Source of the DNA: Macrostomum lignano
Taxonomy: Eukaryota
Assembly: GCA_002269645.1 (NCBI GenBank)
Contig: NIVC01003963.1
Span: 1 to 64,000 of the forward strand
Length of the DNA stretch: 64,000 nt
Reading direction: 5' to 3'
The notes beneath the pieces were generated by a model. That model searched no databases. It saw only the letters and a list, made by a program, of their open reading frames with translations, and had not been told where the DNA came from. The translations under genes were made by a program, and so were the position numbers. This document shows, one piece after another, positions 9,161 to 61,291 of this stretch. How positions within the stretch are numbered: position 1 is the first letter of the stretch; every line of letters begins with the position of its first letter.

Positions 9161-12100
9161 ATGTTGGTGCCCAAGTTTGCGCTGCTACTAGCGCTGCTGC
9201 TTTCGTTGCGTCCGTTTGGTGGTAAGGTTTTCATGACTTGGCTACAGACTTCCAATCTCTGAATAAAATATCTCATTTTAAATCATTATTTGCAGCCTCA
9301 GCGTCAACAACAGCAAGATCTGATGAACCAGCAGCTAACACAGCGTCACCAGGTAAAAATGGCCGAATTTTCATAATTCATAACTCGTGCAAGCCGACTA
9401 ATTGAATGGATAAACTGAATAAATATACATGCCAAATTTCCAGAAACCTCCCAGCTAGTTTCTACACTTCCACCCATCGAGCCAGCAACCGAGGCTATTG
9501 TAAACGGATCTGGCACTCCCGCACTCGAGACTAGCACTCCAGCATCCGAGACTGGCACTCCAGCACCCGAGACTGGCACTCCAGCACCCGAGACTGGCAC
9601 TCCAGCACCCGAGACTGGCACTCCAGCACCCGAGACTGGCACTCCATCACCCGAGACTGCCACCGATCTTACAGCAGAGACACAAGAACCGACTATGCCA
9701 GCTACAGCAATGACAAATGACGCAGGATCAACTCACGAAGGCAGTACACCGATGCCTGAGGCTACTGGTTCAACACCTGAAGCACCCACACCGATGCCTG
9801 AGGCTACTGGATCAACACCTGAAGCGCCCACACCGATGCCTGAGGCTACTGGTTCAACACCTGAAGCACCCACACCGATGCCTCAGGCCACTGGATCAAA
9901 ACCTGAAGCGCCCACACCGATGCCTCAGGCCACTGGATCAACACCTGAAGCGCCCACACCGATGCATGAGGCTACTGGTTCAACACCTGAAGCGCCCACA
10001 CCGATGCATGAAGCTACTGGTTCAACACCTGAAGCGCCCACACCGATGCCTGAAGCTACTGGTTCAACACCTGAAGCGCCCACACCGATGTCTGAAGCTA
10101 CTGGTTCAACACCTGAAGCACCCACACCGATGTCTGAAGCTACTGGTTCAACACCTGAAGCACCCACACCGATGCCTGAGGCTACTGGTTCAACACCTGA
10201 AGCACCCACACCGGTGACTGAGGCTACTAGTTCAACACCTGAAGCACCCACACCGATGCATGAGGCTACTGGATCAACACCTGAAGCACCCACACCGATG
10301 CCTCAGGCTACTGGATCAACACCTGAAGCGCCCACACCGATGCCTGAGGCTACTGGATCAACACCTGAAGCGCCCACACCGATGCATGAGGCTACTGGTT
10401 CAACACCTGAAGCGCCCACACCGATGCATGAAGCTACTGGTTCAACACCTGAAGCGCCCACACCGATGCCTGAGGCTACTGGTTCAACACCTGAAGCACC
10501 CACACCGGTGACTGAGGCTACTGGTTCAACACCTGAAGCACCCACACCGATGCCTCAGGCTACTGGATCAACACCTGAAGCGCCCACACCGATGCCTGAG
10601 GCTACTGGATCAACACCTGAAGCACCCACACCGATGCCTGAGGCTACTGGTTCAACACCTGAAGCGCCCACACCGATGCCTGAAGCTACTGGTTCAACAC
10701 CTGAAGCGCCCACACCGATGTCTGAAGCTACTGGTTCAACACCTGAAGCACCCACACCGATGTCTGAAGCTACTGGTTCAACACCTGAAGCACCCACACC
10801 GATGCCTGAGGCTACTGGTTCAACACCTGAAGCACCCACACCGGTGACTGAGGCTACTAGTTCAACACCTGAAGCACCCACACCGATGCATGAGGCTACT
10901 GGATCAACACCTGAAGCACCCACACCGATGCCTGAGGCTACTGGATCAACACCTGAAGCACCCACACCGATGCCTGAGGCTACTGGATCAACACCTGAAG
11001 CGCCCACACCGATGCCTGAGGCTACTGGTTCAACACCTGAAGCGCCCACACCGGTGCCTGAAACCACAGGATCAACTCAAGTCAGCCCACCGGTGACTGA
11101 GGCAACCGGTTCAACACCTGAAGCACCCACACCGATGCCTGAGGCTACTGGTTCAACACCTGAAGCGCCCTCACCGGTGCCTGAAGCCACAGGATCAACT
11201 GAAGAAGTCAGCACACCGGTGCCTGAAGCTACTGCCTCGACGCCTGTCGTGTCTTACTGGGAAGTGCTTTGCCGAAATTTGATGCCAGGCGAGCCGTACA
11301 AGCCGGAATATGGCGACTTGGCATCGGGAGACGCTCAAGCTTTGAGCGATGATGTGAAAGCGTTTGTAAGTTAATGACACCTGTGCTTAAACACCTTACT
11401 GTGTGCGGTTATTACAGACACATTTTCACAACCTACACAGCTTCTGTCTATAAGTTTACAAGCTTCAAATTAGGGAAAAGAGTTATGGAATCACTTCACA
11501 ATTCCTAATTTCACAACTCCTAAATTTTACAATCCCTAAACTTTAATTCCTCAAGAGGCTCAATCTACAAAATTCACAATTCCAGAACTTCACAATCCAC
11601 AAACTTCTCAATCCCAAAGTTCACAATCCCTAAACTTCACAATCCCCAAGCTTCACAATCCCCAAGCTTCACAATCCCCAAGCGTCACAATCCCCAAGCT
11701 TCACAATCCCCATGCCTAACAATCCCAAGCCTCACAATCCCAAGCTTCACAATCCCCAAACTTCACAATCCCAAGCTTCACAATCCCCATGCCTAACAAT
11801 CACAAGCCTCACAATCCCCCGAGCGTCACAATCCCCAAGCTTCACAATCCCCAAGCTTCACAATCCCCAAGCTTCACAATCCCCAAGCTTCACAATCCCC
11901 AAGCTTCACAATCCCCAAACTTCACAATCCCGATGCCTAACAATCCCAAGCTTCACAATCCCCAAGCTTCACAATACCCAAGCCTCACAATCCCCAAGCT
12001 TCACAATCCCCAAGCTTCACTATACCCAAGCTTCACAATACCCAAGCTTCACAATCCCCAAGCTTCACAATCCCCAAACTTCACAATCCCGATGCCTAAC

Positions 12101-15100
12101 AATCCCAAGCTTCACAATCCCCAAGCTTCACAATCCCCAAGCTTCACAATACCCAAGCTTCACAATACCCAAGCTTCACAATCCCCAAGCTTCACAATCC
12201 CCAAACTTCACAATCCCGATGCCTAACAATCCCAAGCTTCACAATCCCCAAGCTTCACAATACCCAAGCCTCACAATCCCCAAGCTTCACAATCCCCAAG
12301 CTTCACAATACCCAAGCTTCACAATACCCAAGCTTCACAATACCCAAGCCTCACAATCCCCAAGCTTCACAATCCCCAAGCCTCACAATCCCCAAGCTTC
12401 ACAATACCCAAGCTTCACAATACCCAAGCCTCACAATCCCCAAGCTTCACAATCCCCAAGCTTCACTATACCCAAGCTTCACAATACCCAAGCTTCACAA
12501 TCCCCAAGCTTCACAATCCCCAAACTTCACAATCCCGATGCCTAACAATCCCAAGCTTCACAATCCCCAAGCTTCACAATCCCCAAGCTTCACAATACCC
12601 AAGCTTCACAATCCCCAAGCTTCACAATCCCCAAGCTTCACAATCCCCAAACTTCACAATCCCGATGCCTAACAATCCCAAGCTTCACAATCCCCAAGCT
12701 TCACAATACCCAAGCCTCACAATCCCCAAGCTTCACAATCCCCAAGCTTCACAATCCCCAAGCTTCACAATACCCAAGCTTCACAATACCCAAGCCTCAC
12801 AATCCCCAAGCTTCACAATCCCCAAGCCTCACAATCCCCAAGCTTCACAATCCCCAAGCTTCACAATACCCAAGCCTCACAATCCCCAAACTTCACGTTT
12901 AACAGACTCCACAATCCCCGTTACATTACTTTAATGATGAGTTTATCATCAATATTAAACCCGCACCTGAAGTACATACATGTATCACCGGTTTGAAGAA
13001 ATGGCATGGACATCAAAAATGAAAATTTGCATTTCAGCTCCAAGAAGCGTTCATCATTTCTGGCAACAACGATTTGAAAAACTCAGAAATTGACATCGTT
13101 GGCTTCGGCAACTCCGGCGGCTCTGTGCAAGTTAACTACGTGCTGAAGATGCCCAGGAGCCCTACTCAAACTTCTCTTGAGTTCCTCAAGTTCTACATTG
13201 ACTTTGGAATTCGCATCTATCAATCATCTGGCAGTAGAAAGATAACAGTACAGGCCGATACAAAAGTGCAAGGTAATTTTCACAGGCCAATGCATTGCAG
13301 AATAGACAATGGACAGTGTATAAATTAATATGCAAACATTTTCAGACTACTCCGGGCTCTTTACACTGCCGCCCATCCAGTCAGCAACCGAGACTGGCAC
13401 TCCAGTACCCGAGACTGGTACTACGTCAACTGAGACTGGCACTCCTGCACCGGAGACTGGCACTCCAGTATCCGAGACTGGCACTCCAGTATCCGAGACT
13501 GGCACTCCAGTACCCGAGACTGGCACTCCAGTACCCGAGACTGGCACTCCAGTACCCGAGACTGGTACTACGTCAACTGAGACTGGCACTCCTGCACCGG
13601 AGACTGGCACTCCAGTATCCGAGACTGGCACTCCAGTACCCGAGACTGGCACTCCAGTACCCGAGACTGGCACTCCAGTACCCGAGACTGGCACTCCAGT
13701 ACCCGAGACTGGCACTTCAGAACCTGAAACTGGCTCTCCGACTTCTGAGACTGGCACTCCGGCATCCCAGACTGCCACCGATCTTACAGCAGAGACACAA
13801 GAACCGACTATGCCAGCTACAGCAATGACAAAGGTCGCAGGATCAACTCATGAAAGCAGTACACAGATGCCTGAGGCTACTGGATCAACACCTGAAGCGC
13901 CCACACCGATGCATGAGGCTACTGGTTCAACACCTGAAGCGCCCACACCGATGCATGAAGCTACTGGTTCAACACCTGAAGCGCCCACACCGATGCCTCA
14001 GGCCACTGGTTCAACACCTGAAGCGCCCACACCGATGTCTGAAGCTACTGGTTCAACACCTGAAGCACCCACACCGATGCATGAGGCTACTGGTTCAACA
14101 CCTGAAGCGCCCACACCGATGCATGAAGCTACTGGTTCAACACCTGAAGCGCCCACACCGATGCCTCAGGCCACTGGTTCAACACCTGAAGCGCCCACAC
14201 CGATGTCTGAAGCTACTGGTTCAACACCTGAAGCACCCACACCGATGCCTGAGGCTACTGGTTCAACACCTGAAGCACCCACACCGGTGACTGAGGCTAC
14301 TAGTTCAACACCTGAAGCGACCTCACCGATGCCTCAGGCTACTGGTTCAACACCTGAAGCGACCTCACCGATGCCTCAGGCTACTGAATCAATGCCTGAA
14401 GCGAGCACAATAAAGCCTGAAGTTACTTTATCGACGCGTGAAGCGACTGGATTGTCGCCGGACCCAACTGCAACGCCGTCAGTGCCTGAGGCTTCACCAA
14501 CGTCTCAAAAATCAAGAACATTAAGTGCTTCGATGACATCAGAGGCAGCGACATCAACTTCAATGATTAGTCAAAGAATGACGGAGTCAACAACAACAGC
14601 ACTCCAACCTGCCACGTCTACTACCAAGTCTGCTTCGGTGCCGACCACAACCGTAACGACTTCTGCTACAACTGCGCCGGCGTTTTGCCTGCCTTCCAGT
14701 TGCAGATTTGGCGGTCGCTGCGTCAACGGCTTTTGCAGATGCAGACCGTTCCGAGGGGGATGGCGCTGCGAAAAGAGTAAGCTCTAAGAATATATATACT
14801 GTGTATAGATATTTCTATTCGAAAACCTAACGAAGCTGATATGATACGAACTAACTTTAAATAGTAAACGCCCTAACCAAAAATAACACTTTGCCGTCGA
14901 TGGGCGAGACAAGTTAATGTTCAGAGTAGTCCTTGACAATGTACAGCCAAGCCTTCGTATACACAAACGGCTCCCTATACTGGGATGGTAAAGCTTTGCA
15001 TACCTTTGAGATTTAAACTGGCAGCGATAGTCTATGGTCAGCCATGTAGCAGCGATAGTCTAAGGCCAGCCCTGTGGCAGCAATAGTCTAAGGCCAGCCC

Positions 15101-26869: not shown

Positions 26870-27410
26870 GTTTTTTGTTGTTAAACGGGGAGCCAGACTA
26901 TATGCCTAGCGCGGATATCAGCCCAAAAAAGCTCTCTCGGACCGCTTAAGCAATTCCCAATATTTTTTAGAGCTGGGTAGTGAAAAAGCCTTGAGGCTCA
27001 CAGCGCTATTGGAGGGTTAATCCCAGCAGAGCTCCTGATTAGGAGACTATAGTCCTTGGTAGATAGGCTGCCCAGACTCGCTCCAATCTAAAGCCTTTTC
27101 CGTAGAATTTGGGGTTTCCCCACTCAGCTCGGACCGCTTTCTAAACTACAATATTTTTGCGCGCACTCCCGGGTTTTGTCTGCTGGGGGTGGTGGGTGGA
27201 CTCGGTCCTAGCACCGTCCCTGATTCCACTTTGGGTTGGCGGTGTCATCTGAGTAGTCCATAGGTTAGAGCTAGTAGTCCTGGTCCCAATCGTGGCCTCT
27301 CGGGCTATGCTCCTGCTGGCAATATGGCCCACAGATAAATCCAGCGGCAAAGCCCTACTTGGGCTGATCCGCGGGGGCCCCTGGCTTCCCACCCTCGTTT
27401 AACAACAAAA
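26870..27410 (+). mobile_element. SL-head family copy B (3' portion) with imperfect inverted end
   Basis: ~27030-27410 aligns by eye with ~43420-43817 (shared ccagactcgctccaa, gggtggactcggtc.tagcaccgtccctgattccactt, gggctgatccgcggg, cgttta.caaca). The left end ttgttgttaaacg is an inverted copy of the right end cgtttaacaacaa. Confidence 0.65.
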
Positions 27411-27560
27411 AGCTATAGGGCTCTGCCGTGGGTTACTTTACTTTACTTGATAGGTAGGGGCTCATAAAATTATTTGCCCTGCGCCTCAGCCCTTTGAAGG
27501 GCTCTTGCGCAACTTTTTTATTTTTGTGGTCCGAGTTTGAGATAACAACAAAAAGCTATA

Positions 27561-28205
27561 GGGCTCTGCCGTGGGTTGGGTCCACCAGGGGATATAGCCC
27601 GGGCCACTAACCTAAAAAAAATTGGAGTCCTCCTTTTTGTAGCACAAAGCTAATTTTGGGCTGCGCACAAAGATTCGCAGACTATTGGGGATTTGGCCGG
27701 GGTGGCCTAAAAGCCAAAAGAGTCAAGGTTGGAGCGCCATCAGGGGTGCAAATTTTTGTACATGTAAGTCTCTTACTGCAAAGTCTAAACTGTCATGAAT
27801 GGCCAGAACACCGTTATCTTTTAGTTGGATCAGGTCCGGCTTCCTAAGGTAACCATCGATCATCATGATCAGTCCCGACCGAAAACCGCCCTGCTTCAGG
27901 CTGGGCTGCTGTAGGCAACCGCGAGATCTATGATTGCATCTCTGTTGCAAGCCGTCGGAATCCCGCACCCCAGGTGAGAGCTGCAGTCGCCAGATACTGC
28001 CGAACACTAATTCCAAGATATCATGCAGGGTCCCCAATTCCGGCGGGTTCCATCATCTTGGGCACTTCCGGGACCACACGCATACGAGCTACGCTCGTAT
28101 GTGTGGCCTTCCAGGCAGCCCGGACAGGAGGCCCCAGGCCGCAGCACAACCCTCCGGGCTGAGTACGCCAGAGGCGACAATCTCATCAGAGATCCTCTTT
28201 ACGGC
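27561..28205 (-). mobile_element. SL-head family copy C, tail-to-tail with copy B
   Basis: Minus-strand start gccgtaaagaggatctctga is 18/20 identical to the head at 42722; shares ctctggcg, gggttgtgc, cgggctatat.cccctggt and cggcagagccc with copy A. Confidence 0.6.
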
Positions 28206-29659: not shown

Positions 29660-31380
29660 CAAGGACCACTAGAAGTTACCGTTGTATCAGGACGCAACAC
29701 TCGTAAATATTGCAAAATTATTTGAAGGCCCGCTTGTTTACGTGTATTTATCGGTACTTGCCTTCAAAAAAGTATTCTACTTGACTGTTTTAAAGAAGCA
29801 TGCACTATATTTGAGCCTCAGAAGCTCCATAAATAGGTGTATTTATACTTTATTTAGGCTTTAATCTGTTAAATCTAGATATTTTAAGTAATTATGTCAT
29901 TATATGCAACTTTGCAACTCGATCGTTTTAAAATTTCTGAAGTTTTTATGCCCACAGCAGACATACTATATAAATTGGCGAAAGCGTGAGAAAAGGATCA
30001 GATGGGCTTCTAACTAGTTTACTATCAACAAAAAGTAATATTTTTAGCTTATAAGCTTAGCCTTTAGCTGTATGACTAAGTTATAGCCCTATCATACTAA
30101 AACTTTAACTGCTACTAGCCTAGGCCTAACATGATAAAATTCTATTCTGTTACTGTTTTGAAATAGGCCTAGTTCACAATTAAATCTATATAGTTGATTA
30201 CTTACAGTGGTTACAGGACAACATTCTAATACTTATATAGTTTAGATTGGTATAGCATAATGTAATATAGTGGATAGAATCCTTGTTAGTTTTTTGCAAG
30301 AAAGTTTTATATAGAAGTTTATAAATTCCATATTATACAATTTCAATTAGTAATTAATTAATAAAAGTAATTAATTAATTAAATAATTAATTGAGTAATT
30401 AATTAGTAATTAATCAATCAGTAGTCCTTAAATGGCCATTAATTTTTGTTATATTATTAATTATACTGGATTAATTATATTATTTTACTAAGCTGAAGTT
30501 TTATGTTTAAAACTGAAGTCTAGGGTAAAAGAATAATGTTTTCACTATATATTAACATGACAAATAGAAAAAAAACATTTTAGCCTAGGCTAAACTTGAA
30601 GACAAATATAGCTATACATAGTAAGTATTATAGACAATATGTTTTTTGTTTATTTAGCAATATGGCTTGTAGTTTTTATAGCTTTTGTTGTTAATACAAT
30701 AATATTTTGAAGCCTAAGATATTTATTTCCTTACTTATTAAGACAGTTTTGTATAGTAGGATATATACTATTGTTAGACTTATCTTAAAGGTATTGCCCT
30801 AACTATAGGCCTAGCTTTGGCGGGAGGGAGGGAGGAGGAGAGAGGAGGGAAAGAGAAAAATAGGGGAAAGAGAAGCAAGGGGAGAGGGAAGAGATGAGAA
30901 GGAGAAAGAAGAGAGATGAGATAAGAGAGAAAGGAAAAAGTAGAGAAGAGAGTACAGATTAGAGAGCAGAGTAGAGAGAAAAGAGAAGAGAAAAAAGGAG
31001 AAAGGAGAGATGGAGAAATTAAAGGGAAGAGAAAAGAGGAGAAAGGAGAGATGGAGAAAGTAAAGGGAAGAGAAAAGAGATAAGATTGTAGAAATGAGAG
31101 AGATGAAAGAAGAGATGAGATAAAGGAGAGTGGAGAGAAAAGAGAGGGAGAGTAGAGAAGAAGGTAGAGAAGAGAAGAGAAAGGAAAGAGAGGAGTCAAA
31201 AGAGGGGAAAGAAAAGAGTACAGAGGAGAGATAGATATGAGAGAAGAAATGAGACAGGAAAGAGTAGATAGGAGAGAGAATCGAGAAGAGAGGAGAGAGG
31301 ATCGAGAAGAGGGAGGAGTAGAAAGATGATAGGAGAGATGAGAAATGAGAACAGAGACAGGAGAGGGGAGAAGAGGAAAT

Positions 31381-31463
<83 letters not shown>

Positions 31464-32405
31464 CTACCTAACCTAATCTAGTTTTTTATCAGTGCAATAG
31501 AGAGAGAATTAACTAGAAACAAATATTTTGTCGTTCATTGCAAAGCAGATATTTATTGATCTCACATTGGTTTCATTCCAGGTGTGCCAATTCATCCAAT
31601 CTAGATGTTCATCCATCAATGTCTGATGAGCTACCATGGTGAAGTACGGTACTTATGATTCATTATGCTTTGTGATTTCAAGAGATTTTTTGGACAGAAT
31701 GACTCGATTGATATGGAAGTTCAAGTTTAAAATACATACATAGGCTTACTGTTAGTTTTTTGCTTAGTTTTCTTATTTCGCATGCATTTTTATGAAATTA
31801 GAAGTTTTTATATCGAAAGTGAACTTTAATACAAATAAAGTTGGTGATACTGTACAAGTTTTATTTGACTCCTACTGTTCATTTGAACAGCAAAAGAAAG
31901 ATTATGAATGTTGGAGTCCTTGTTGGGCTGGTGTGCCAAGAATTCAAAAATACTACGCCTTTCTTGATTTTGATAATACTGGTTTTTGATAGTGAAGTGT
32001 ATAACGCCTTTGCAGCCTGCTCAACTCTGTACAGATTATCTGCTTTATAAAGCTTCAAAACTGCAGGATATAAAGCATGGTCTGCTACTTTATCGAGACT
32101 AGGAGGCTATGGTTGAAAAAACAAACTTTATATTCATTTTGACTGCAATGAAATATTGCGTATTGCCGTTACTTTACTGTACGCCCGCCGCTCCTACATG
32201 TAGATATAGCGCCAAACTTTGCATCATGTGAAAGAGAACAAAATTTTGAGCAACCTGGCGAAAAAATTATCATTCTAGGTGCAACCAGTCCGGAGTTATG
32301 AGCATTTAAAGTTTAGCTGCAATGCAAACAAGCGGGCCTTCAAATAATTTTGCAATATTTACAAGTGTTGCGTCCTGATACAACGGTAACTTCTAGTGGT
32401 CCTTG
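29660..32405. mobile_element. Non-autonomous DNA transposon (P or hAT superfamily), 2746 bp
   Basis: 80-bp TIRs 29660-29739 and 32326-32405 (79/80 identical, starting CAAGG); 8-bp TSD TAGAGAGG at 29652-29659 and 32406-32413; no intact transposase seen. Confidence 0.85.
30820..31461. repeat. Purine-rich low-complexity tract ending in (GA)n (31383-31461)
   Basis: Direct reading. Confidence 0.9.
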
Positions 32406-37329: not shown

Positions 37330-38510
37330 GGTCGACCTGCACCTACAAGTACATGCTCGCTGCATCCGGCTGTTCTGCACGTACTCATTCACAGCTGCTC
37401 ATCCAGAGGAGGCACGAGTGTTCTTGACCTCCTAGCTGGGCAGCTGGAGGAAGTGCCAAACCGGGACACACTGGTGGTGCTTGGAGACCTAGTTCTTTTG
37501 TCACCGGACGCGAGAACGCCAACACGGTCACGCTGAAGTTACCTGCTAAACTGGCTAGATCTAGTGTCCACTAACACCCAGTTCCACAAGCCTTCCTCCT
37601 GCCTGGTCACTTAATTTGCGCTCTGCAAGAGGAGGCGGCAGGATGCACGTGGGCGGAACGCGGAGGGAACGCCACTCGATCGCTTACTGCGTTACTAACT
37701 GCGACACAGGGGGGGGGGCGTAGCCCAGCGGTCTAGCGCAGGCTCTGGTGTGCCAGCGACCCAGGCTCGATTCCAAGTGCAGTCACATTAATTTGGGGCT
37801 GAATTGGAATCTCGGCTTGGCTCTGCTCGTGCAATTAACGGCCTTGAGAGCCAACCCCCCAAGGTGCAGTGAAGTGTACATGCCTAACGATAAAATAAAG
37901 TTAGGGCCGCTGTACACTCCTGTGTGAGTGTGTGCCTGCGTACGTATCCGCGCGCTTGTATGCCTGCTCAGGGGAGTCGGCGGAATGGGCAGAAATGCCT
38001 CTCGCCGGTTGTGTGCCTATGTGGCTTAAAGTGCGCCAGGGTGCACACAACCCCCCTGTCTCTAATAAAAAAACTGCGACACCATGGCATCGCGCTTGGC
38101 GATCAGCGCGAGGCGTTGGGATACACAGACATCAGCGCTGCCGTGAGAGCGGTTTATGAACAGACGGTCCCACTGATGCGATCTGCACAACGACCCTGCC
38201 TATCTGGTAGAGCGACCCCACCCTCGGGCGGACGCGTCTACCTTTGTGAATTGTGCGACTTCCTCTCGTCAGCATCGTGAACGCGCTAGAGCCGCCTATG
38301 CTCATCAACTTCTCGCTCCCGCCAGACACGCCGCTACAAGCCAAGGAGGACTTCTGCAGCAACTTAGTTACCAAGAAGTTCCCAAGACTTCCCAAGTAGT
38401 AGCAAGCGTGTTGAACTGCGTGCTTACTGGCACTCCCGCATCCACTGAGTGGAACACAGGGCACATTGTGACTATCCCGAAGAAGTCCGGGACAAAGCGG
38501 AAAGACAAGG
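37330..38510 (+). mobile_element. Degenerate RTE-like non-LTR retrotransposon fragment (APE endonuclease and N-terminal RT remnants), interrupted by a SINE
   Basis: ctggtggtgcttggagacct = LVVLGDL; EWNTGHIVTIPKK resembles the pre-RT W..S.I..IPKK motif; frameshifted. Confidence 0.5.
37708..38071 (+). mobile_element. tRNA-derived SINE, copy 1
   Basis: A box TAGCCCAGCGG and B box GGCTCGATTCC; A-rich tail ctaataaaaaa; 11-bp TSD AACTGCGACAC (37697-37707 / 38072-38082). Confidence 0.85.
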
Positions 38511-38697
38511 AAATCTCACCCATGAGGGCCAACCCCAAGGCACAAGAAGTGTACATGACAGGATCAGGATCAGGATCAGGATCAGTTGTGATCGAAAAAC
38601 AATGTGGTTGAAGGCGTTGCGCCAGGTTGCTTATACAGCCCTCCTGTGCATATTTATTATTTGGACGATTTTTACAGACATTTCCGTCCCAGTAGTG

Positions 38698-38910
38698 CAG
38701 GGGTCGACAAACTGCGGCCCTCGGGTCATTAGAAACTTCACAATATTAATCCGGCCAGCTCAAGGATTGTGTCTCTTCTCAGCTTCCTTCTCTATAATCT
38801 CCTCTCCCTTCTCTTTCTCTTTCTCTCTTCTTTCTCCCTTTCTCCGGCCCGCAGTCATGCGCTGGGTTCTCTATCTGGCCATTGAGGTAAAAAAAGTTAG
38901 CCGACCCTTT
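38698..38910. mobile_element. Charlie/hAT-like MITE, short copy with CT-rich interior
   Basis: Ends caggggtcgacaaac ... gttagccgaccctt; internal aaacttcacaatattaatccggcc is the reverse complement of the block at 57650-57673. TSD not clear. Confidence 0.6.
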
Positions 38911-39042
38911 CCAGACTACGGTTGAAAGTTAAAAGCTCCGATCTACAACCCCAGTGTCACATTCCTTGTATTTAGCGCGGTCAGTGCGATGTACTCTTAC
39001 TATTCCCTTACTAATTCCCTTACTAATGCCAAATTGACTCAC

Positions 39043-39315
39043 CGACTGCCAGCTCTTCGTCCTCCAACTGCAGTCCCCGAGTCCACATTACGCAATAGTA
39101 GTCAGTAAGCCTCTCCGGGCAGAACATGCCGTCACTCTTGTAAAAACATCCGGAATTGATAGCGGCAAACTTGCTAGTGCTGTTGCGCAATCGCCTGTCC
39201 AGCTCGTCTGGTGACTCCGGCGCGTGTCCGGACTTGCTGGCCCGGAACCGGATGCGACCTCCGCCGCCGCCTCCGCGACCCATCCTGATACTTGACTCTG
39301 GATGGACAATTCACT
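39043..39315 (-). other. Putative unassigned exon (possibly an upstream exon of the GPCR gene)
   Basis: Acceptor ttttag| at 39316 and donor |gtgagt at 39042; GC-rich; ATG at 39283 opens MGRGGGG..EELAV with phase-1 exit. Confidence 0.3.
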
Positions 39316-39734
39316 CTAAAACTAAAAACAATCCTTGAACAAAGTCTCTATCCAATGCAATAAACCAGCTGGGTTAAGCTACAGCATATATGTGTATATA
39401 TAGACTTGCACGCACCGTGTGCGGGCTTTAGCTATATCCAGTTTATCGTCCCAACTCTTCCCTCCACCCCGTTTCCCATTCGATCAGCATCCCCTCTCCT
39501 TCCTCCTCTGTCTCTCAGCCCCTGTAGAGGCAGCGAATACCGAGGCTCTTCCCTGTTGGAAACGAAGGGTTTGCTATAGCAATATTTTATTCACCCAGAA
39601 CCCCCGGAAAATGTGTGCGCTGCAGCTGGACAAAAAACACTATGATTTAAAAAATCCAACTGCATGAAGTTACAGAAAGCTGGGAAAAAATGTTGTTTTC
39701 ATTGCAAAAGTTTTCGCTCCACATCTGCTTGTCT

Positions 39735-40095
39735 TTTATTAGAGGCAGGGGGGGGGCTGTGTGCACCCTGGCGCACTTTAAGCGACATAGGCACACAACC
39801 GGCGAGAGGCATTACTTCCCATTCCGCCGACTCCCCTGAGCAGGCATACAAGCGCGCGGATACGTACGCAGGCACACACTCACACAGGAGTGTACAGCGG
39901 CCCTAACTTTATATTATCGTTAGGCATGTACACTTCACTGCGCCTTGGGGGTTGGCTCTCAAGGCCGTTAATTGCACGAGCAGAGCCAAGCCGAGATTCC
40001 AATTCAGCCCCAAATTAATGTGACTGCACTTGGAATCGAGCCTGGGTCGCTGGCACACCAGAGCCTGCGCTAGACCGCTGGGCTACGGCCCCCCT
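39735..40095 (-). mobile_element. tRNA-derived SINE, copy 2 (inverted relative to copy 1)
   Basis: Near-identical reverse complement of 37708-38071; 13-bp TSD CATCTGCTTGTCT (39722-39734 / 40096-40108). Confidence 0.88.
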
Positions 40096-40669
40096 CATCT
40101 GCTTGTCTGTAAATTTAGAAAAGTACACATGAATCGCTTCTTACTGAATTGCGGAACACAATCAATGTCTCTTTCCTGATGTTGCTTTGAATGCGCTCAT
40201 TTCTGCCGTCTTAACGAAAGAACTGTACGTCCTTTACTGACATTTACAAGTGGTTTCTACTCGAAACAGAAATCGTCTGGATTACAATTTTTTCTTTATT
40301 TGCTCAGTGCATTTCTGTCAATCAGATGTTGACCGAATCATTATCGATATAGCTAATATACGCTCGCAGATATCTCTCTTTTAATGGTTAAGTTAGCTGA
40401 TTACAAGAAGTACGTTCATTATGTCGATTTTTAAAAGGCCACTAGAGTTTATCTATGTTTGAAGGAATATCGCTTGAATATACAGTAGGGTTCCTGTGAC
40501 CCATTTTAACTAATTTATAATAGCGATTTTCGGTGTTGGTTGCACCAAAAAAGGTCACATTATATATGACGTATTTACATGATATTTACATGCACGTTAT
40601 GACACACATGCCACCCAATCAAAACTTTTAAAAGCCCAAACAACTGCTGAAGTAGAAGGATGTAGGCTA

Positions 40670-41320
40670 TGCTGGATTTTCTTAGACTTGACTTATGCTT
40701 GGATTTTCTTAGAAATGGGCTGGTAAGGAACTTATGCTTGGATTTTCTTAGAAATGGGCTGGTAAGGAACTTATGCTTGGATTTTTTTAGAAATGGGCTG
40801 GTAAGGAACTTATGCTTGGATTTTCTTAGAAATGGGCTGGTCAGGAATTTATGTTTGTATTTTCTTAGAAATGGGCAGGTAAGGAACTTATGTTTGGATT
40901 TTCTTAGAAATGGGCTGGTAAGGAACTTATGTTTGGATTTTCTTAGAAATGGGCTGGTAAGGAATTTATGTTTGGATTTTCTTAGAAATGGGCAGGTAAG
41001 GAACTTAAGCTTGGATTTTCTTAGAAATGGGCTGGTAAGGAATTTATGTCTGGATTTTCTTAGAAATGGGCAGGTAAGGAACTTATGCTTGGATTTTCTT
41101 AGAAATGGGCTGGTAAGGAACTTATGTTTGTATTTTCTTAGAAATGGGCAGGTAAGGAACTTATGTTTGGATTTTCTTAGAAATGGGCTGGTAAGGAACT
41201 TATGTTTGGATTTTCTTAGAAATGGGCAGGTAAGGAACTTATGTTTGGATTTTCTTAGAAATGGGCAGGTAAGGAACTTATGTTTGATTTTTTTAGAAAT
41301 GGGTAGGTAAGGAACTTGTG
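40670..41320. repeat. 39-bp minisatellite TTGGATTTTCTTAGAAATGGGC(A/T)GGTAAGGAACTTATG(C/T), ~16 copies
   Basis: Direct reading; 13-aa periodicity in the ORF track. Confidence 0.95.
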
Positions 41321-42717
41321 TTTGTCGTATTACCGGCATTCAACTTATTTCTAAGAAAATTCAGTGTTTCGTCGTTCTAATGAATTTGGACATCTAGATC
41401 CTCTGCTCTGCTTTTACTGTAAGATGTTTATATCGATGCAGTTTATTTTGGCAACACTATACAATTCTGCGGAAAAAATTCCTCGCTTGAATAACCAGAG
41501 ATTATTTATGGGTCAGACTCTATCATAGTGCCGCGATAAATTTTGCAACCATGCGGATAAACCATAATAAACAAAACGCCCATTAGTTGTATGTCCCAAT
41601 TCAGCGTCAACAGCAGCATCTCATGCTCGGGTTGTCTTCTTCTCCTTCAATCTGTGGTTGGATGACAGCTATTATTTATAGTGTATGCGAATTTTAATAG
41701 CTTCAAGGTCAATCAATTGACGACCTTATTGATTGAAATCGTTCTCCAGCGCTCACAAAAGCTTCATGTAAACTTGAAACAGTCGAATTCAACAGCCCGA
41801 AAAAAAACAAAAATCGAAGTTCCGTCATGTGTGCCGTGAAGCAGCTGGCATCTGATATACTTCCGTTGTTGCTGCTACATGCATGAAGTTGCTGCTGAAT
41901 GGTGAGAAACCCTAACAGTTCTGGACACTGCAAGTCAGCCTCTACCCAGCCAGTCAGATACATCCACGGTAGCTATGCAGCACAGCACTCCGATTCTGGT
42001 ATTGATCTCAGCGCGGGATCTTTCTCGATCCCAATTCTCTCAATCCCAATTGCCCTTCCCTATTCCTTGGCAAATTGATTTCCTATTTGCCTGTAGCCAA
42101 GAAGCATCAAGTGGATAGGGTTTCTTAGTTTTTTAATCGAATTATAATTACTTTGCTATATACTGTGTTCCATCGCCTGCTCACCGAGCTAACCCATGCA
42201 AGATGAAAAGCCTTGAGTATACTCCTACATATAGTTCGTATGTACACACACTGTGCACACACCACCAAGGCTGGAATGCTCAAATTGACGAAAAAATAAG
42301 CCACAAAAACACAAAGAAGTTTTATTGCTCACTTCTTTCCGCAAAGAAACGAACTGTAAAAAGCAGAACACACTTTGACCTGGAGAAGCTGAAAGACGAG
42401 AACATCAGGGACAAATTCCAGAGTGAACTTGCATCGAGATTTGCACCTCTGCTACAACTCGCAAAAGACCAACATTCACGAATAATAGGATATGACAGCG
42501 GAAGCAGCAAGGAAAGTTCTGGGGAAGCACTGAAGAATCCAGAAAGCCGTGGATCATCAAAGAGGTCCTAGCGACGTAAGCTACGAAGCAAAAGACATGA
42601 GGGAGAGAAACAGCTGTAAACGAGTACAGAAAAGAAAACAAAGAAGTGCGAAGGCAATTGAGAAAAGGGAAAGAAGAATGGGTAGAGGAACATTAAGCTA
42701 GGCTGGTGGAAAGCAAC

Positions 42718-43817
42718 AACCGCCGTAAAGACGGTCTCTGACTGTTTTTACCCTGGCTGCCTCTCTGGCGGCATTTCTCGGGTTGTGCGCAATCCAATAA
42801 GAGTCCTCACCGGAGGTGATGTACTCATCTAAAAATAACCCTATTTTTTCTTTCCAATTAATTTTTCGGCCCTCGGCCTTGGTTTAGGGGGTGTACCTGG
42901 AGTGAGTGCATACTCTGGACTGCAGTGTGGCTAGAACGCGACTTGAGCCCCCCGGTTGCACCCGCCCTGCAGGAAAGAAAATGACCATTCACAAAGGTGT
43001 ACGGTAGAGCCCAGTTAGCATGCCAGCCCTGAGGCTGAGCCCCGAGTTTAGGGTTCAGGTGCTCCTCCCTTTGTTTTTTATCCCCTTTGTGTTTTATCAT
43101 ATCTTTGTGCTTTTATTAATGTAAGGCCTTTGAATGCCGTTCCAAAATTCTGGAGTTATGAGCTCTGCCCGATCCCTGCCCGGTCCATCTTGCTCTGTCC
43201 TTGGTCCATCTGCTGGCTCCTCTGGTTGTCTCCCTGCCCTTGTGTCTTGGCTCTCATCCTGACAGTGGATTGAAGGGAGTTCTGGGGCTGATGTTCGTCC
43301 CGAATCGGGGATACCGGCTGAGTCCGGGTCCTCTTGCTCCTTTTGCCCCTTCCCGACCTCTTGGCCTGGCCTCCAATAGGTAGGTGATACCCTTGGGCTT
43401 GCAGCCCTGTAGGTAGTCGTAGGTCCTGCCTGACAGGAGACTCGCCCTCGGAAACAAGCCTTCCAGACTCGCTCCAAAATTAAGCCATTTCCGAGACTTC
43501 GGGTTTCCCCGCTCTCGGACCGCTTTCAGTAGTATCCCAAGTTTTTTTCCAATTCTTTTTTTGCGCACTCCCGGGACTTGTCTGCTGGGTGATGGCTTGG
43601 GTGGACTCGGTCTTAGCACCGTCCCTGATTCCACTTTTGGGTTGGCGGTGTCTTAGTCCATAGGTTTGGGTTGGCAGATTCCCCTGGCCTCGACGTCAGG
43701 GTCCAATCTCGGGGTATCTCGGGCTATATGCCCCTGGTAGTGCCCCTCAGCGGCAGAGCCCCTCCCAGGGCTGATCCGCGGGTAGCTCCCGGCTTCCCAC
43801 CCCCGTTTAGCAACAAC
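42718..43817 (+). mobile_element. SL-head family copy A: 1100-bp non-coding insertion with spliced-leader-like 5' end and CAA-type tail
   Basis: 8-bp TSD AAAGCAAC (42710-42717 / 43818-43825) whose removal restores the host RTE frame; homologous to copies B and C. Confidence 0.75.
42722..42892 (+). ncRNA. Candidate SL/snRNA-like structured RNA head
   Basis: 5' hairpin GCCGT-AAAG-ACGGT, three further hairpins, Sm-like AATTTTTCGG (42860-42869) followed by a weak stem-loop. First 23 nt match the Macrostomum SL as recalled (22/23). No AUG|GU donor. Confidence 0.4.
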
Positions 43818-45524
43818 AAAGCAACTCGAGAGAAGCTTATAAAACAATCAAGAACTTGACGGAAAGACGCAAAAAAAACATATGAATGCACGTCGAGATG
43901 AAGGCAGCTAGGTTTCAGAAAAGGACCGGAGCACTATATAGAGCAAATTACCAACTAGCGACTATATGCCAGAAATCACCAAAAGATCATCTGTCACGAT
44001 TTCATAGACTTCAAAAAGGCCTTTGAAAGCGCTGTCAAATAAAAAATCGGAGAAGACATCACAAGAGTAATTAAGCGACTGTCTGAAGAAGTATTTAGCG
44101 CGTAGAACTACATGTATGTCTGAAAAACGGTTAATGAATGACAGACACCATAGAGGAACTGCATTGAGGTCAGAATCAGCTGCGGAGGCATGAAATCAAC
44201 AACTCGAGGTTTGCAGATGACATTGATTTGATTGGCAAAGATCGAGGAAGAATGGCAGAACTGACAGCAAATCTGGACAGAATTTCAAGACAGTTTGGCA
44301 TGGAAGTCAGCAAAGAAAAGAGCAAGCTGACAATGGGACAGGGAATGATGAGGAAAATTAAGTCAGGCTATAGGGATTGTGATTGATGAAGAAGTTTAAA
44401 TATCTAGGGGCAACCATCATTGAGAATGGGACACCTCGGAGGAAAAGATCAGAATCGGAATTGAGCTCGATTTTGGTGGCTCAAAGGAGGTCGGTTTGAA
44501 AATCGCCTCAAGATCACAAAGGCGGTCACCTGGACGACACTGCGAGAGCTGGACTATGGAGAAGACAAGTATGGAGACACAAGATCAAGCGTTTGCTATG
44601 AAACGTTACAGAATGCTAAATGGTTTCATGGAAAGAGAGAAAGACAAAGGCCTAGCTGGATTTGGAGAAAAGACGGATATTGGGAAGGAACCAGAATCTG
44701 TGATCAAGCGGAGAATAAAGCTCAAATAGCTCGTATTACGGGTAGCTCGTATCAGACAAGGAATCCGAAGAGGAAGACCGAAAAGGCAGTTGGGAAGATG
44801 ACCTGAAGGAATGGACCAGTTGGACAAGAGGAGTCTAAGAAAAAGCAGCGAACAGGCAGTGTTGGTGGCGGAATATTACGAGTAGGCTGGTGCATGAATG
44901 TGGTGCATCCACGGTCATAACGGCTAACTGCTAAGAACTTTTAGCCTCGATCTGGCCCTACATGTTCATGTACATGTATGCATGCGAGCCGTTATAGGTG
45001 TCGTCACAAAATACACGTGTACACAGTATAATGCACATGATTTAGGGGGTAAATGGGGGCGGTAACTTACGCAGAGAATTAATATGCGATAACAAGCTGT
45101 ACATGTACATGTATAGACTGTATAGTAGCTAAGGTTATTGTGTCTCAGACTTTAAGTTGTAAACGACTAAGAGTGTACATTTTTCTGAAGTTACTGGGAA
45201 AAACGTTTCTTACATAAAATTTTAGGTGGATATATATACAATGTTGCAATTGTACTCCGCGTGCGTTGATCGAGACACGAATCAAACAACGAATCACTTT
45301 ACTTTTAATTAGCTTTTACATTATACCCACGTATTACGTAAGTGAAAATGCAAATGCAAATACAAATGAAAAATTTGCGATTTGCCAATGACCATCCATC
45401 GACGTCGGAAAATCATTTCTTCATGCAAGAAATGCTGCTGAAAGAGTCCGGCAAAATTTTCATTGTTACGAACTGGACAGATTTTTAACAGTAATACGTT
45501 GCTCGTGCTCATACATGTACGTAA

Positions 45525-46314
45525 ACAGCAACAACAACAACAGAATACGCAGTTAGCGTCACAGGGCGCGCTTCAAAGCCAGGTCGCGAATGAACGCCAC
45601 GCCGCCAGCCGAATCCGGGGCGCCGGCGTCAGCCAGTAGGCAGTCGACGAAACGCCGAGTGCGGGCCTGCCCCCGTCGGTAGGGTTCCTGCAGCGTTAGC
45701 AGCAGCACCTCCTGCACCGGCTCTGGGCAGTACGACTCGGCGCGGATGATGTGGCCTGCCAGCTGGAGTCGCCGACGGCGCAACAGGTCGCTTTGGACGG
45801 ACCAGGCCGGCGCGGTGATACAATAAAGCCGCGTTGGTGACTCGCTCGTAGCCGATCTTAAAGGCAGCGCGCAGCAGGCCAGCGTGCGCCGCGTCAACTT
45901 GCTGCTCGAGCGACTCCGTCAGCGTCCATGTATCGGCGTTGTACAGCAGGACGGTCTCGATCACCGCCTGGAACAAATGCCGCCCTCTGGCGGTCAGAAG
46001 GCCTCGGACTGCAGGACTGCCCTCACAGAACGAAAGGCAGCCCAGGCAAGCCCGCGGCGACGCCGCAGATCCTCACGGACGCCGGGAACCAGACCGCCGA
46101 GGTTAGACGAACTGCACTGACAACGCGGCCGGAAGCTCTGTCGCCTGTCTTATCAGCGCCTCGGCATAAAATTGCAGCCTCGATGTCGTCCGTCACGCAG
46201 AGCATGACGGTTTTCTGTGTGTTGACAACCAGGCCGCCACTCGCCGCAACAGCAACTAGCTTGTCCAGTTGTCGCTGGGCGCCCTCGACAGTTAGGACAG
46301 CAGATGTGTAGATG
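45525..46314 (-). mobile_element. 5'-truncated RTE-like LINE insertion
   Basis: GLVVNTQKT, ETVLLYNADTWTL and RRRRLQLAGHIIR..RRGQARTRRF motifs; (GTT)n tail; 13-bp TSD TACATGTACGTAA (45512-45524 / 46315-46327). Confidence 0.85.
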
Positions 46315-47266
46315 TACATGTACGTAAGCTTAAGCTCGACCGATCTGTGGCTAGACCTATGGGCCACTGGAAAATACTGTAAAAATAAGTTAAATTTTAG
46401 GCTAATTTGAAGGAGTGTATAGCAGGAGTGCTAAATATAGCTGCCAGCAGGTTCTCGATCTTTTAAAAGTGCATGGCGTTTGACTATATTGCAGCATATA
46501 ACGCATTAAAAATCAGTGAAATCCCTTAAACTGTAGACAATATGCTAGAATACAGCATTGTAAACATACAACACTCGGGGTAATACTTCTATGAATAATT
46601 TTTCGGGGATCAAGCTGTTGTTCAACCAAAGGACTAACGTAAAAGCCTCCTTGATAAATAAACCCAAAAAAAGAAAACTCTTATAAATATTTTTTAACTC
46701 TAAGCTTTTTAAAAATACTTAAGCGACACATACCAGCGAAAACCTAGTTGAAAAAGGCAGGAAGTAGCTAGTTTTGTTTTAGTTTCTAAAGTTCTTTGCA
46801 ACATTTTAAACCAATAAGTTAAATATCGCGGAATATTATATAATTACGAGAAATGAAAATTCCCCGTCATTAATATATATTAATTGTAAAATTTTTGACT
46901 AAGATTGAAAGAAATTCTGGACTGATAACTGTGTCTTGTCTGCACTGTGAATAAAATGAGGCTCGCTAATTGAAACTGCTCTTTTGCTATATTCTGGCGA
47001 GTTAATTTTGGTGTTACCAAAAGGCAAAAAGTCTAAAGTCAAAATCCCAAGCCATTAAACGTACAGTCCCGAATATTCCTTGTTGCAGTTATTACTTTTC
47101 TAGCTTTAATAAACTTGCTTTCGATAGCTCTGAAGCTTTATTCTATTTTTAGTACCCGCTGGCCGCTGGTGTATTTTTATAAGCCTATCATCCCTTAGAC
47201 TTAGAAATATCCTCTCAAAAGCAAAATCTTAAAAGTGAGCTTCGTTCAGTATTATCAAGTAAAATT

Positions 47267-58134: not shown

Positions 58135-58950
58135 AGTGATTTTGCTGGGCCATTGATTAGCTCTGCCTAAACTACATAGCCTCCAATATCTTCAGTTGCT
58201 GGGCCAGCCTCCCAGAGTGTCTGTTGCTGGGCCAGCCTCCCAGATCCTCAGTTGCTGGGCCATTGACTAGCTCTGCCTAAACAACATAGCCTCCAAGATC
58301 TTTAGTTGTTGGGCCATTGATTAGCTCTGCCTAAACAACATAGCCTCCAAGATCTTTAGTTGTTGGGCCATTGATTAGCTCTGCCTAAACAACATAGCCT
58401 CCAAGATCTTCAGTTGCTGGGCCACCAGCCTCCCAGATCCTCAGTTGCTGGGCCACCAGCCTCCCAGATTCTCAGTTGCTGGGCCAGCCTCCCAGATCCT
58501 CAGTTGCTGGGCCACCAGCCTCCCAGATTCTCAGTTGCTGGGCCACCAGCCTCCCAGATCCTCAGTTGCTGGGCCACCAGCCTCCCAGATTCTCAGTTGC
58601 TGGGCCAGCCTCCCAGATCCTCAGTTGCTGGGCCACCAGCCTCCCAGATCCTCAGTTGCTGGGCCAGCCTCCCAGATTCTCAGTTGCTGGGCCAGCCTCC
58701 CAGATCCTCAGTTGCTGGGCCAGCCTCCCAGATCCTCAGTTGCTGGGCCAGCCTCCCAGATCCTCAGTTGCTGGGCCACCAGCCTCTCAGATCCCCAGTT
58801 GCTGGGTCAACAGCCTCCCAGATTCTCAGTTGCTGGGCCACCAGCCTCTCCAGCCTCTCCAGCCTCACCACCCAGTTGCTGGGTCAACAGCCTCCCAGAT
58901 TCTCAGTTGCTGGGCCAGTCTCCCAGATCCTCAGTTGCTTAGCCAACCTC
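58135..58950. repeat. 28/31-bp minisatellite TTGCTGGGCC(ACC)AGCCTCCCAGATCCTCAG upstream of HSF, with longer variant units at the left end
   Basis: Direct reading. Confidence 0.92.
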
Positions 58951-59030
58951 CCAGATCCCCAGTCGCTGCAGCTCTAGAACACGCACCGAATCCCGATCAA
59001 AATTGCAGCCAGTCACTCTCCAGCGCTAGC

Positions 59031-61291
59031 ATGCCAGCAGTGGTGGGATCCGAGCAGCTGCCTGAGTCCCAGCCAGGCCAACAGCCCGCCGCAGGTGCCT
59101 CTCCAAATCTTCGGCGCGGACTGCCCGGCGGCCTGCCCGGCTTCCTGGTGAAGCTATGGACTCTGGTCAACGATCCCACTATCGATTCGATAATCAGCTG
59201 GGACTCAACCGGCGATTGCATCCTCATCTCGGATGGCAACGCTCTCGCGGCCGAGGTTCTGCCATTGTACTTTAAGCACAACAACTTGGCCAGCTTCACG
59301 CGCCAGTTGAACATGTACGGCTTTCACAAGCTGGCATCCGCCGATAGCAGCGGTCAGATGCACTTTCAGCATCCGTACTTTCGGCAGGGACAGCCGGAGC
59401 TGTTGCCAAGCGTCAACCGTCAGATGCTTGGAGGCGGCGGCCGGTACAGCCTGGCTCTGACTACTAGGCATGGCGGTACTGCGGCAACTACAGGCGACGC
59501 TATGGATCCGCAGCAGCAGCCATCGGTGTCAGGGGGCACCGCACCGTGTGAGGGCACCTCTGACGGAGTCGACCCGGTGTCGCTTAACGGTCGCGACGCT
59601 GTGCAGGCCGCGCTGACCGAGATGCGCACGCGGCAGTCGGCTACTGACCAACAGTTGAGGCGGCTGTGCGATGAGAATCATAAACTGTGGCTGGAATTGG
59701 ATAACCTGCGGGTGCAGCACCAGCAGCAGCAGGTGAGGCTGGGTGTCTAACACAGAACAGGCTGTCTAACACACAGAACAGGCTGTCTAACACACATAAC
59801 AGACTGTCTAACACCCAGAACAGGCTGTCTTAACACACAGAACAGGCCATGTCTGACACACAGAACAGGCTGTCTAACACACATCCGGCTGTCTAACACA
59901 CAGAACAGGCTGTCTAACACACAGAACAGGCCATGTCTGACACACAGAACAGGCTGTCTAACACACATCCGGCTGTCTAACACACAGAACAGGCCATGTC
60001 TGACACACAGAAAAGGCTGTCTAACACACAGAACAGGCTGTCTAACACACAGAACAGGCTGTCTAACACACATCCGGCTGTCTAACACACAGAACAGGCC
60101 ATGTCTGACACACAGAAAAGGCTGTCTAACACACAGAACAGGCTGTCTAACACACAGAACAGGCTGTCTAACACACAGAACAGGCCATGTCTGACACACA
60201 GAACAGGCTGTCTAACACATATCCAGCTGTCTAACACACAGAACAGGCTGTCTAACACACAGAACAGGCTGTCTAACACACAGAACAGGCCATGTCTGAC
60301 ACACAGAACAGGCTGTCTAACACATATCCAGCTGTCTAACACACAGAACAGGCTGTCTAACACACAGAACAGGCCATGTCTAACACACAGAACAGGCCAT
60401 GTCTAACACACAGAACAGGCCATGTCTAACACACAGAACAGTCCGTCTAACACTTAGAACAGGCTGTCTAGCAACTGAAAATAGATAAAATTTTTGTACA
60501 AACTGATGACAGACTATTATATAAAGTTAACCTGTCCATGAAACCCACCATCACTGCAGGTGGCTGTCACCTGGCTCCTGGACTTCATCAAAGCCGCCAT
60601 GGTGAATCGAAGCGCCAATCAAGGCGTCAGCGGCGGCGGCATCCGGGGGCCTCGAATAAGCGAGCCCGACCTGCAGTCTGCTGCTGACAGCTCCGCCGCT
60701 GCCGCCGCCGCCGCCTCCTCGATGGGGCCGCTGGGCGCTGCCACCTCTAGCGGCTCTGTACCGTCCGACACTTCCGGTTTCAACCGGAAGCGGCCATATC
60801 CGTTCCCCTACCCGCAGCAGCAGCAGCAGCTGATGGCTATCGAGATGCCGCCTGCGGCGCCAGCCATCGAGGCTCCCCGTCAGCGTCGGGCCATCACGCA
60901 GCTGCCGCCAACGCCGACTACCCCGCAGCCGCCGCCGCCGCTGACGCCGACAGCCGTGTCGACCTCCGCCGAGTCTCCCAGCATCGCCGACTTCTGCCCG
61001 GAGGCATTCAGCGCAGATATCAATTCCCGACAAGCCGACTTGGACGGCATTGTGAATGCTTTGGAGACGGACGAATCGTTGGACTTCGATGTTGACAGGC
61101 TGTTGGCTGAGCTGGTGCAGTCGCCGCCGACTCCACAGCAGCAGCAGCCGCAGCAACCGCCGGCTTCTGTGCCAGCGGCGGTGACCGGTTTAACCAAACA
61201 GCAACCGCCTGGTTCAAATAACTCTGAAGACGCTGAGCCGCCACTACTGGACAGCTGTTTGATTGAGGATCCGGGACAATTGTTTAAATAA
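59031..61291 (+). CDS. HSF: Heat shock transcription factor, ~477 aa. Exons 59031..59732, 60560..61291
   Basis: HSF DNA-binding domain PGFLVKLWTLV..YFKHNNLASFTRQLNMYGFHK..FQHPYFRQG; HR-A/B coiled coil continued across a phase-0 intron (QQQQ|VAVTWLLDFI); HR-C-like LDGIVNALE..FDVDRLLAEL. Start ATG inferred. Confidence 0.92.
59744..60470. repeat. 21-bp-based minisatellite CTAACACACAGAACAGGCTGT filling the HSF intron
   Basis: Direct reading; two or three interleaved variants. Confidence 0.93.

Follow-up and report, generated by a model that had tools for sequence, protein, structure and literature searches.

The stretch analysed here, called the window throughout, is 64,000 nucleotides (nt) long and covers positions 1 to 64,000 of contig NIVC01003963.1 of the flatworm Macrostomum lignano (assembly GCA_002269645.1). 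It holds a non-coding insertion of 1100 bp, element A (Table 1), whose first bases are those of the spliced leader (SL) RNA of its host. A is enclosed by a perfect 8-bp direct repeat, the target-site duplication (TSD). Excision of the insertion together with one copy of the TSD joins ...ARLVESN to SREAYKTIKNLT... in a single frame, and the rejoined host frame, stops aside, extends from KPWIIKEVL (42544) past FADDIDLIG (44210-44236), with a weak match to RVT_1 (Pfam, E 1.6e-4). Because the TSD is perfect and the host frame is restored, we take the insertion to be real and its host to be the decayed relic of a reverse transcriptase (RT) of the type without long terminal repeats (non-LTR). An alternative 9-bp duplication, AGCAACAAC, was rejected since it would break the host frame. 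The original prediction, made from the letters of the window, had placed a 1100-bp insertion with a TSD in a relic of the RTE clade. Insertion, duplication (AAAGCAAC on both sides) and RT relic stand, but the clade label is unsupported, the relic having no similarity to an RTE-like open reading frame (ORF). The target AAAGCAAC and the tail of A (AGCAAC) have microhomology, which would fit insertion by target-primed reverse transcription.

A reads AACC-GCCGTAAAGACGGTCTCTGACTG; the four leading bases are plausibly filler at the 5′ junction, and the head sits at the 5′ terminus set by the TSD. Aligned to the authentic Macrostomum SL, the head matches at 22 of 23 positions over SL bases 1-23, including an exact 17-mer; a match over the first 23 nt had been predicted. 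The match scores 38.2 bits against a best of 28.2 among 30 block-shuffled windows. The SL reference itself was confirmed in three ways: by the published M. lignano sequence, CCGTAAAGACGGTCTCTTACTGCGAAGACTCAATTTATTGCATG (PMC5173321); by the SLs of M. cliftonense, which is the M. lignano sequence plus a leading G, and of M. hystrix, identical across the 43 nt assembled (both PMC10468722, supplement); and by an SL RNA gene on a metagenome contig, L044. The head of A begins with G, as do the M. cliftonense SL and that of the L044 gene.

The L044 gene was the one genuine SL RNA gene returned by a 17-mer scan of metagenomes, together with 46 chance bacterial matches. It reads G-CCGTAAAG...TTGCATG|GTAAGACACCGG..., carries an Sm-like AUUUUUAG between two hairpins and has the canonical fold. 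We note that bases 1-8 of the SL recur at its positions -15 to -8 (GCCGTAAA), and that a Na/K-ATPase beta-chain gene (L044 1774-2922) lies about 1 kb downstream.

Past base 23, A bears only chance-level similarity to the rest of the SL RNA, exon and donor included (610 of 1000 shuffles score equally), and the same is true of A and its relative C, described below, when the sequence after the head is compared with SL RNA bases 24-105. The head of A is followed by no AUG|GU and no donor, in agreement with the original prediction. A also lacks the organisation of an SL RNA gene or pseudogene (exon with GU donor, Sm site between two hairpins, about 100-110 nt), and no complete SL or SL gene occurs in the window. 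One segment antisense within C (27768-27797, +; GTCTCTTACTGCAAAGTCTAAACTGTCATG) resembles SL bases 13-44; it was rejected as a real SL, its exact 12-mer core being at chance level (13 of 30 shuffled windows). The idea that bases 1-165 of A as a whole are a diverged SL-like small nuclear RNA (snRNA) was likewise rejected, as the similarity is at chance level. A retrocopy of a trans-spliced mRNA would have the 3′ part of the SL next to the body: A does start at SL base 1, but SL bases 24-45 and the AUG end are missing, so the earlier view that A is no simple retrocopy of this kind is borne out. On this sequence evidence, the extreme 5′ end of A is derived from the 5′ end of the SL RNA and is not a chance match.

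Element bases 4-30 of A fold as GUAAAGACGGUC-UCU-GACUGUUUUUAC (-13.2 kcal/mol, z -5.46, 0 of 200 shuffles), a 12-bp terminal hairpin that was not among the features of the original prediction. In inverted orientation, bases 19-30 (GACTGTTTTTAC) complement head bases 4-15 almost perfectly, and G19, the sole mismatch of the head to the SL, closes the stem. A snap-back origin for the SL-like half of the hairpin was rejected, as the 18-nt identity to the SL would then be a coincidence. The other predicted hairpins are less marked. The minimum-energy fold does contain three small ones and a stem-loop, yet the 5′ 179 nt exceed shuffled sequences in stability by a modest margin only (z -2.35); the structure of the 3′ 258 nt is not unusual (z -0.33). 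Of the predicted Sm-like site with its stem-loop, the stem-loop after AATTTTTCGG is found, whereas AAUUUUUCGG is no canonical Sm site and its resemblance to the Sm region of the SL RNA is not significant.

The body of A has no similarity to C, the SL RNA or the remaining window. Six-frame translation of A gave no Pfam family at E<=1 and no RT or endonuclease remnant, and comparison with Rfam gave no match at E<=10, ribozymes included. No tRNA and no 7SL or 5S similarity was found in A. Its two pseudo-ORFs, 43254-43634(-) and 43097-43477(-), have no relatives in protein libraries, and an exact look-up of window ORFs gave no record. The sense strand contains ten runs of T4-T7, the first of them, a 5-T run, at element base 28; a full-length RNA polymerase III transcript of A is therefore implausible.

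Table 1. Positions of element A, its host relic, the related elements and the reference SL RNA gene (window coordinates unless a contig is named)
Feature	Position	Strand	Remarks
Host of A, decayed non-LTR RT relic	42544-44877	+	frame continuous over the empty site; FADD at 44210-44236
TSD, left copy AAAGCAAC, 8 bp	42710-42717	+	same letters as 43818-43825
Element A, insertion	42718-43817	+	1100 bp, between direct repeats AAAGCAAC
AACC, four extra bases in the gap from TSD to head	42718-42721	+	not in C, not in the SL gene
SL-derived head GCCGTAAAGACGGTCTCTGACTG	42722-42744	+	SL bases 1-23 with T19G
5′-terminal hairpin, 12 bp	42725-42751	+	head bases 4-15 pair with bases 19-30, UCU loop
Family-specific non-coding body	42752-43378	+	no Pfam in six frames, no Rfam or tRNA match
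Small hairpins in A body	42756-72, 42780-95, 42807-19	+	minimum-energy fold
AATTTTTCGG and stem-loop in A body	42860-78	+	stem-loop in minimum-energy fold
3′ block common to A and B	43379-43816	+	~70-73% identity depending on method
Conserved 3′ hairpin GCGG..AGCCC-loop-GGGCU..CCGC	43750-43779	+	in A, B and E; loop expanded by ~65 nt in C
3′ end and microsatellite-like CAA-type tail GTTTAGCAACAAC	43805-43817	+	end CCCCGTTTARCAACAA also in B and C
TSD, right copy AAAGCAAC, 8 bp	43818-43825	+	perfect repeat of 42710-42717
Element C, 3′ end ...GGGCTGATATCCGCG...CCCCGTTTAACAACAAAAA	26872-26989	-	tail ends ~26872
Copy B, 5′-truncated relative of A	26990-27406	+	417 bp, headless, inserted into C
Element C, small piece	27414-27434	-	belongs to C
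Element E, 108-bp 3′ fragment of a related retroposon	27435-27542	-	(AAAGT)n tail
Element C, 5′ part	27578-28205	-	head GCCGTAAAGAGGATCTCTGA at 28205-28186
SL RNA gene	L044 601-722		3-kb Joint Genome Institute (JGI) metagenome contig Ga0302322_100095745; SL 100% identical to published

Elements related to A

Three further elements of the window, B, C and E, share parts with A; statements about the family rest on these four elements within one window, and nhmmer found no further copies there. B is flanked by a 7-bp duplication, AAAAAGC (26983-26989, 27407-27413), and aligns solely to bases 662/671-1099 of A. C is 767 bp long once the inserts B and E are removed, and a boundary in GC content (0.64 to 0.27) coincides with its head (28200). 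E is bracketed by a perfect 35-bp direct repeat (27400-27434, 27543-27577). We note that 26872-28205 forms a three-layer nest, in which C was interrupted by B and then by E; the 35-bp duplication of E, which is unusually long, spans the B/C junction, and the nest yields the relative order of insertion.

Local alignment of A and C revealed three common parts, each with 0 of 300 shuffles reaching the observed score. These are the head (20 nt, 18 of them identical, with G at SL position 19 in both), a 38-nt 3′ block, CGGGCTATAT.CCCCTGGT..GGCAGA, and the terminal CCCCGTTTARCAACAA. By the same shuffle controls, the bodies and the sequence just past the head are at chance level. B and C had both been said to keep the head and the 3′ blocks; the 3′ module is indeed in both and the head in C, but B is headless. 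Two head stems had also been credited with compensatory changes in C. Because A and C resemble each other past the head no more than expected by chance, such changes are indistinguishable from chance, and homology of the hairpins that follow the two heads was rejected for the same reason.

A and C are the only elements of the window with untruncated 5′ ends, and both are headed. In three Macrostomum species the SL has TCTCT-TA at the place where A and C have TCTCT-GA, a coincidence to which we assign a chance of about 0.05 by our own estimate. The head of C, like that of A, lies in a terminal hairpin (z -2.2, against -5.5 for A), and both hairpins include the non-SL bases that follow. Since C has an unrelated body and yet the head, deviating from the SL at position 19 just as A does, the head appears to have been inherited as part of the element.

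At the other end, A closes in the CAA-type tail GTTTAGCAACAAC, as the original prediction had it. A, B and C have in common the 3′ hairpin, the tail and the end CCCCGTTTARCAACAA; of these E has the hairpin alone, its own tail being (AAAGT)n. Across all four elements the loops of the hairpin vary, one pair is compensatory and the remaining stem pairs are invariant. Duplications, 5′ truncation, a conserved 3′ module and simple-repeat tails together make up the anatomy of elements mobilised by a long interspersed element (LINE). A itself has a TSD with an empty site, relatives that are 5′-truncated and keep the 3′ end (B and E), and no coding capacity. These features, with the lack of Pfam, Rfam and tRNA matches, uphold the prediction of a non-coding mobile insertion, and A is best read as a full-length representative of a retroposon that is non-coding, non-autonomous and dependent on a LINE. 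The safe part of this reading is that A is a non-autonomous retroposon whose 5′ terminus is derived from the SL RNA 5′ end. An identity as a hAT or Helitron element was rejected, given that A has no terminal inverted repeats and the 5′-truncated copies argue for retroposition.

Origin of the spliced-leader head

We favour, with our confidence evenly balanced, the reading that A and C are LINE-dependent retroposons with an inherited, SL-derived 5′ hairpin module, and that RNA polymerase II transcribes their source copies, starting at SL +1. The 5′ module would consist of bases 1 to about 18-23 of the host SL RNA, folded as a terminal hairpin, and a transcript begun at the head would read SL 1-18 and then GACTGTTTTT. 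Two arrangements could give such a start. One is a 5′ transduction, in which a master copy lies within, or goes back to, an SL RNA gene broken at about base 20; in the other, the SL start helps to position initiation or contributes to it. In the Ascaris SL RNA gene the SL start reportedly contributes to initiation. Transcripts of this kind would begin in an SL-like hairpin, end in the manner of a LINE and be copied in trans, the conserved 3′ hairpin module and CAA-type tail being the part recognised by the RT of the partner LINE, and A would have been inserted by target-primed reverse transcription. We infer the polymerase, the promoter, any cap, the function of the head and the partner LINE from the layout of these elements. 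The suggestion in the original prediction that the SL start serves as promoter and cap mimic may also hold. If the module is inherited, full-length copies would be expected to start GCCGTAAAGA..TCTCTGA at a fixed junction.

Several observations weigh against this reading. The headed copies number two, and C is old and decayed, with 3 of 20 head positions differing from the SL. Scans of viral and genome sequences gave chance matches only, and neither these nor the metagenome scan gave further copies of A or C. The shared G19 is weak evidence, as a variant SL gene or the hairpin could also account for it. The head, at about 20 nt, is shorter than that of any short interspersed element (SINE) known to us. 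No partner LINE with the 3′ end of A was found in the window or the fetched contigs. The two LINE relics of the window, considered as partners, were rejected because their tails and 3′ untranslated regions (UTRs) differ from those of A; the host relic ends in an ACATGT-like repeat. The other relic, at ~45530-46367 (-), is a 5′-truncated RTE-like LINE fragment (RT C-terminus) with a 3′ UTR of about 20 nt and a (TTG)n tail; its named relatives are confined to UniRef entries of M. lignano (52-77% identity). Further relatives, on contigs from metagenomes and one Logan run (L049, L050, L054, L055), end in (TTG)n or (TTCC)n, and none of these contigs resembles A, B, C or E.

The main rival holds that the SL is a passive tag without a role, each headed copy being a one-off chimera that afterwards lost part of the SL; this we regard as possible rather than probable. 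The tag could have been acquired by trans-splicing of the retroposon RNA, or by a template switch of the LINE RT onto abundant SL RNA, as in U6-L1 chimeras. In Hydra, transcripts of transposable elements (TEs) often carry the SL (about 30% of TE Iso-Seq reads; PMC12220107), and a 2025 survey of parasitic flatworms lists 597 discarded 'SL loci' in LINE/LTR repeats, with a partial leader only (PMC12582326). The precise start of the head at SL base 1 is what would be expected of an RT reaching the 5′ end of its template, and the AACC at the 5′ junction of A is typical of untidy 5′ joins. Trans-splicing, however, would keep the 3′ half of the SL (...TTGCATG) beside the body, and it is this half that is absent. 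Independent events would also not be expected to give two unrelated bodies that break at the same place and share G19-A20, nor do they account for both heads lying in a hairpin with the non-SL bases that follow.

Also put forward by the original prediction was a non-autonomous derivative of a retrotransposon that targets SL genes (NeSL, SLACS, CZAR, CRE), co-transcribed from the SL gene. The abrupt end of SL similarity at about base 20-23 does resemble a fixed site inside the SL exon. The surroundings speak otherwise, with A in a LINE relic, C in AT-rich DNA and the window devoid of an SL gene, and the target of A, AAAGCAAC, does not resemble the SL. Comparison of A with Pfam in six frames yields no remnant of an RT or endonuclease. 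Non-specific insertion of the LINE type is in keeping with the microsatellite tail and 3′ hairpin, with the duplications of 7-8 bp around A and B, and with the 5′-truncated relatives. We consider such a derivative very unlikely.

A classical RNA polymerase III SINE, whose head happens to be SL-derived, would share with A and C a layout of head, body and tail, flanking duplications and a LINE-like 3′ module. SL RNAs are, however, products of RNA polymerase II in the organisms studied. The ten T-runs from element base 28 onwards would act as internal terminators, no tRNA, 5S or 7SL similarity is present, and the lengths of 1100 and 767 bp exceed the ~100-600 bp of classical SINEs. The original prediction of a SINE does not survive in this sense, and we give it hardly any credence.

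Chance resemblance, with a 5′ end unrelated to the SL, is effectively refuted: the match is short (23 nt) and the remaining element shows no SL RNA similarity, but the exact 17-mer and 22/23 identity outscore all 30 shuffled windows, the match starts at SL base 1 on a TSD-defined terminus, and C has the head at its own 5′ boundary, where about 0.004 20-mers within 3 mismatches are expected per window by our estimate.

Other features of the window

A long tandem array with a period of 18/36 nt and 118 register copies occupies 1-4700, with long open frames on both strands. Thr/Pro-rich, mucin-like repeat ORFs of PEATGSTPEAPTPM units (559 and 485 aa) lie at 9695-14787 (+) and have no Pfam match; the second has a cysteine-rich tail end, and the region shows a strong negative GC skew. 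A second tandem repeat, of 39 nt, is found at 40575-41339, with both strands open and minus-strand units KSKHKFLTSPFLR.

At 37705-40101 a unit of about 2.4 kb is enclosed by inverted repeats of about 350 bp that are 97% complementary; it is possibly a foldback or terminal-inverted-repeat DNA transposon. Another inverted-repeat pair, of 80 nt and 99%, lies at 29660-29739 and 32326-32405. In the ORF at 58476-59750 (+), a proline/serine-rich repeat is followed by an HSF-type DNA-binding domain (Pfam E 1e-29); the ORF is probably an exon of a host heat-shock factor.

Known systems and significance

No description of an SL-headed non-autonomous retroposon was found in the literature searched; flatworm repeats with partial leaders have, however, been recorded before. 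In layout, A and C come close to SINEU (U1/U2), SINE3 (5S) and the modular SINE superfamilies, which also have a head-body-tail structure with a head that comes from an abundant small RNA and starts at its first base, bodies that vary by family, a LINE-type 3′ module, duplications and 5′-truncated copies. They differ in that the head takes up some 20 nt of the small RNA in place of all or nearly all of it, RNA polymerase III is implausible and the elements are 0.8-1.1 kb long. U6-L1 and other snRNA-LINE chimeras likewise start at base 1 of a small RNA, continue into an unrelated LINE-type 3′ part and have one duplication around the whole. Those are single events with a full-length or variably truncated small RNA, whereas A and C share a short head, a junction (G19-A20, in two elements) and a hairpin, and their bodies match no LINE or gene among the sequences compared.

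SLACS, CZAR and CRE of trypanosomatids and NeSL-1 of nematodes are, like A and C, retroelements linked to the 5′ part of the SL exon, and co-transcription from the SL start is the proposed route of expression there too. These are autonomous elements that encode an RT and a restriction-like endonuclease and occupy SL genes, whereas A and C code for nothing and are located elsewhere. The nearest functional analogy is Pr77 of trypanosomatids, a short conserved 5′ signature found across otherwise different autonomous and non-autonomous retroposons (L1Tc/ingi, NARTc, SIDER) and described as an internal RNA polymerase II promoter with reported binding of SNAP50 and TBP (PMC8190864). Pr77 has no sequence relation to the head of A; it is 77 nt long, contains a ribozyme and has a tested function, while any function of the head is hypothetical and A matches no Rfam ribozyme.

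The loci with a partial leader in flatworm LINE/LTR repeats also tie part of an SL to retroelements. They were discarded as not being SL genes and read as integrated trans-spliced transcripts (PMC12582326), whereas A keeps the 5′ half of the SL without the AUG end, contrary to what plain trans-splicing would leave. The SL relics of dinoflagellate retrogenes belong with these loci as a comparison for A.

For annotation, SL-like starts inside repeats should not be taken as SL genes, and heads of this kind would offer a second explanation for the hundreds of repeat-borne partial-leader loci dropped by flatworm SL-gene surveys. If the head is family-wide, the SL RNA would be one more of the few cellular RNAs that have lent their 5′ end to retroposons as a head, in this case an RNA polymerase II small RNA of which only about 20 nt were taken. 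Such recruitment would suggest that the start of the SL has a signal of its own for initiation, stability or capping, as yet unmapped in flatworms. More tentatively, and less probably than not, the first ~20 bases of the SL may be a portable 5′ module, combining a start site or promoter with a terminal hairpin and perhaps a cap context, that retroposon families have adopted; the converse would be that SL RNA genes and headed retroposons share ancestry. Were the portable module to prove true, A and C would represent the first SL-RNA-headed, SINE-like superfamily of the RNA polymerase II type.

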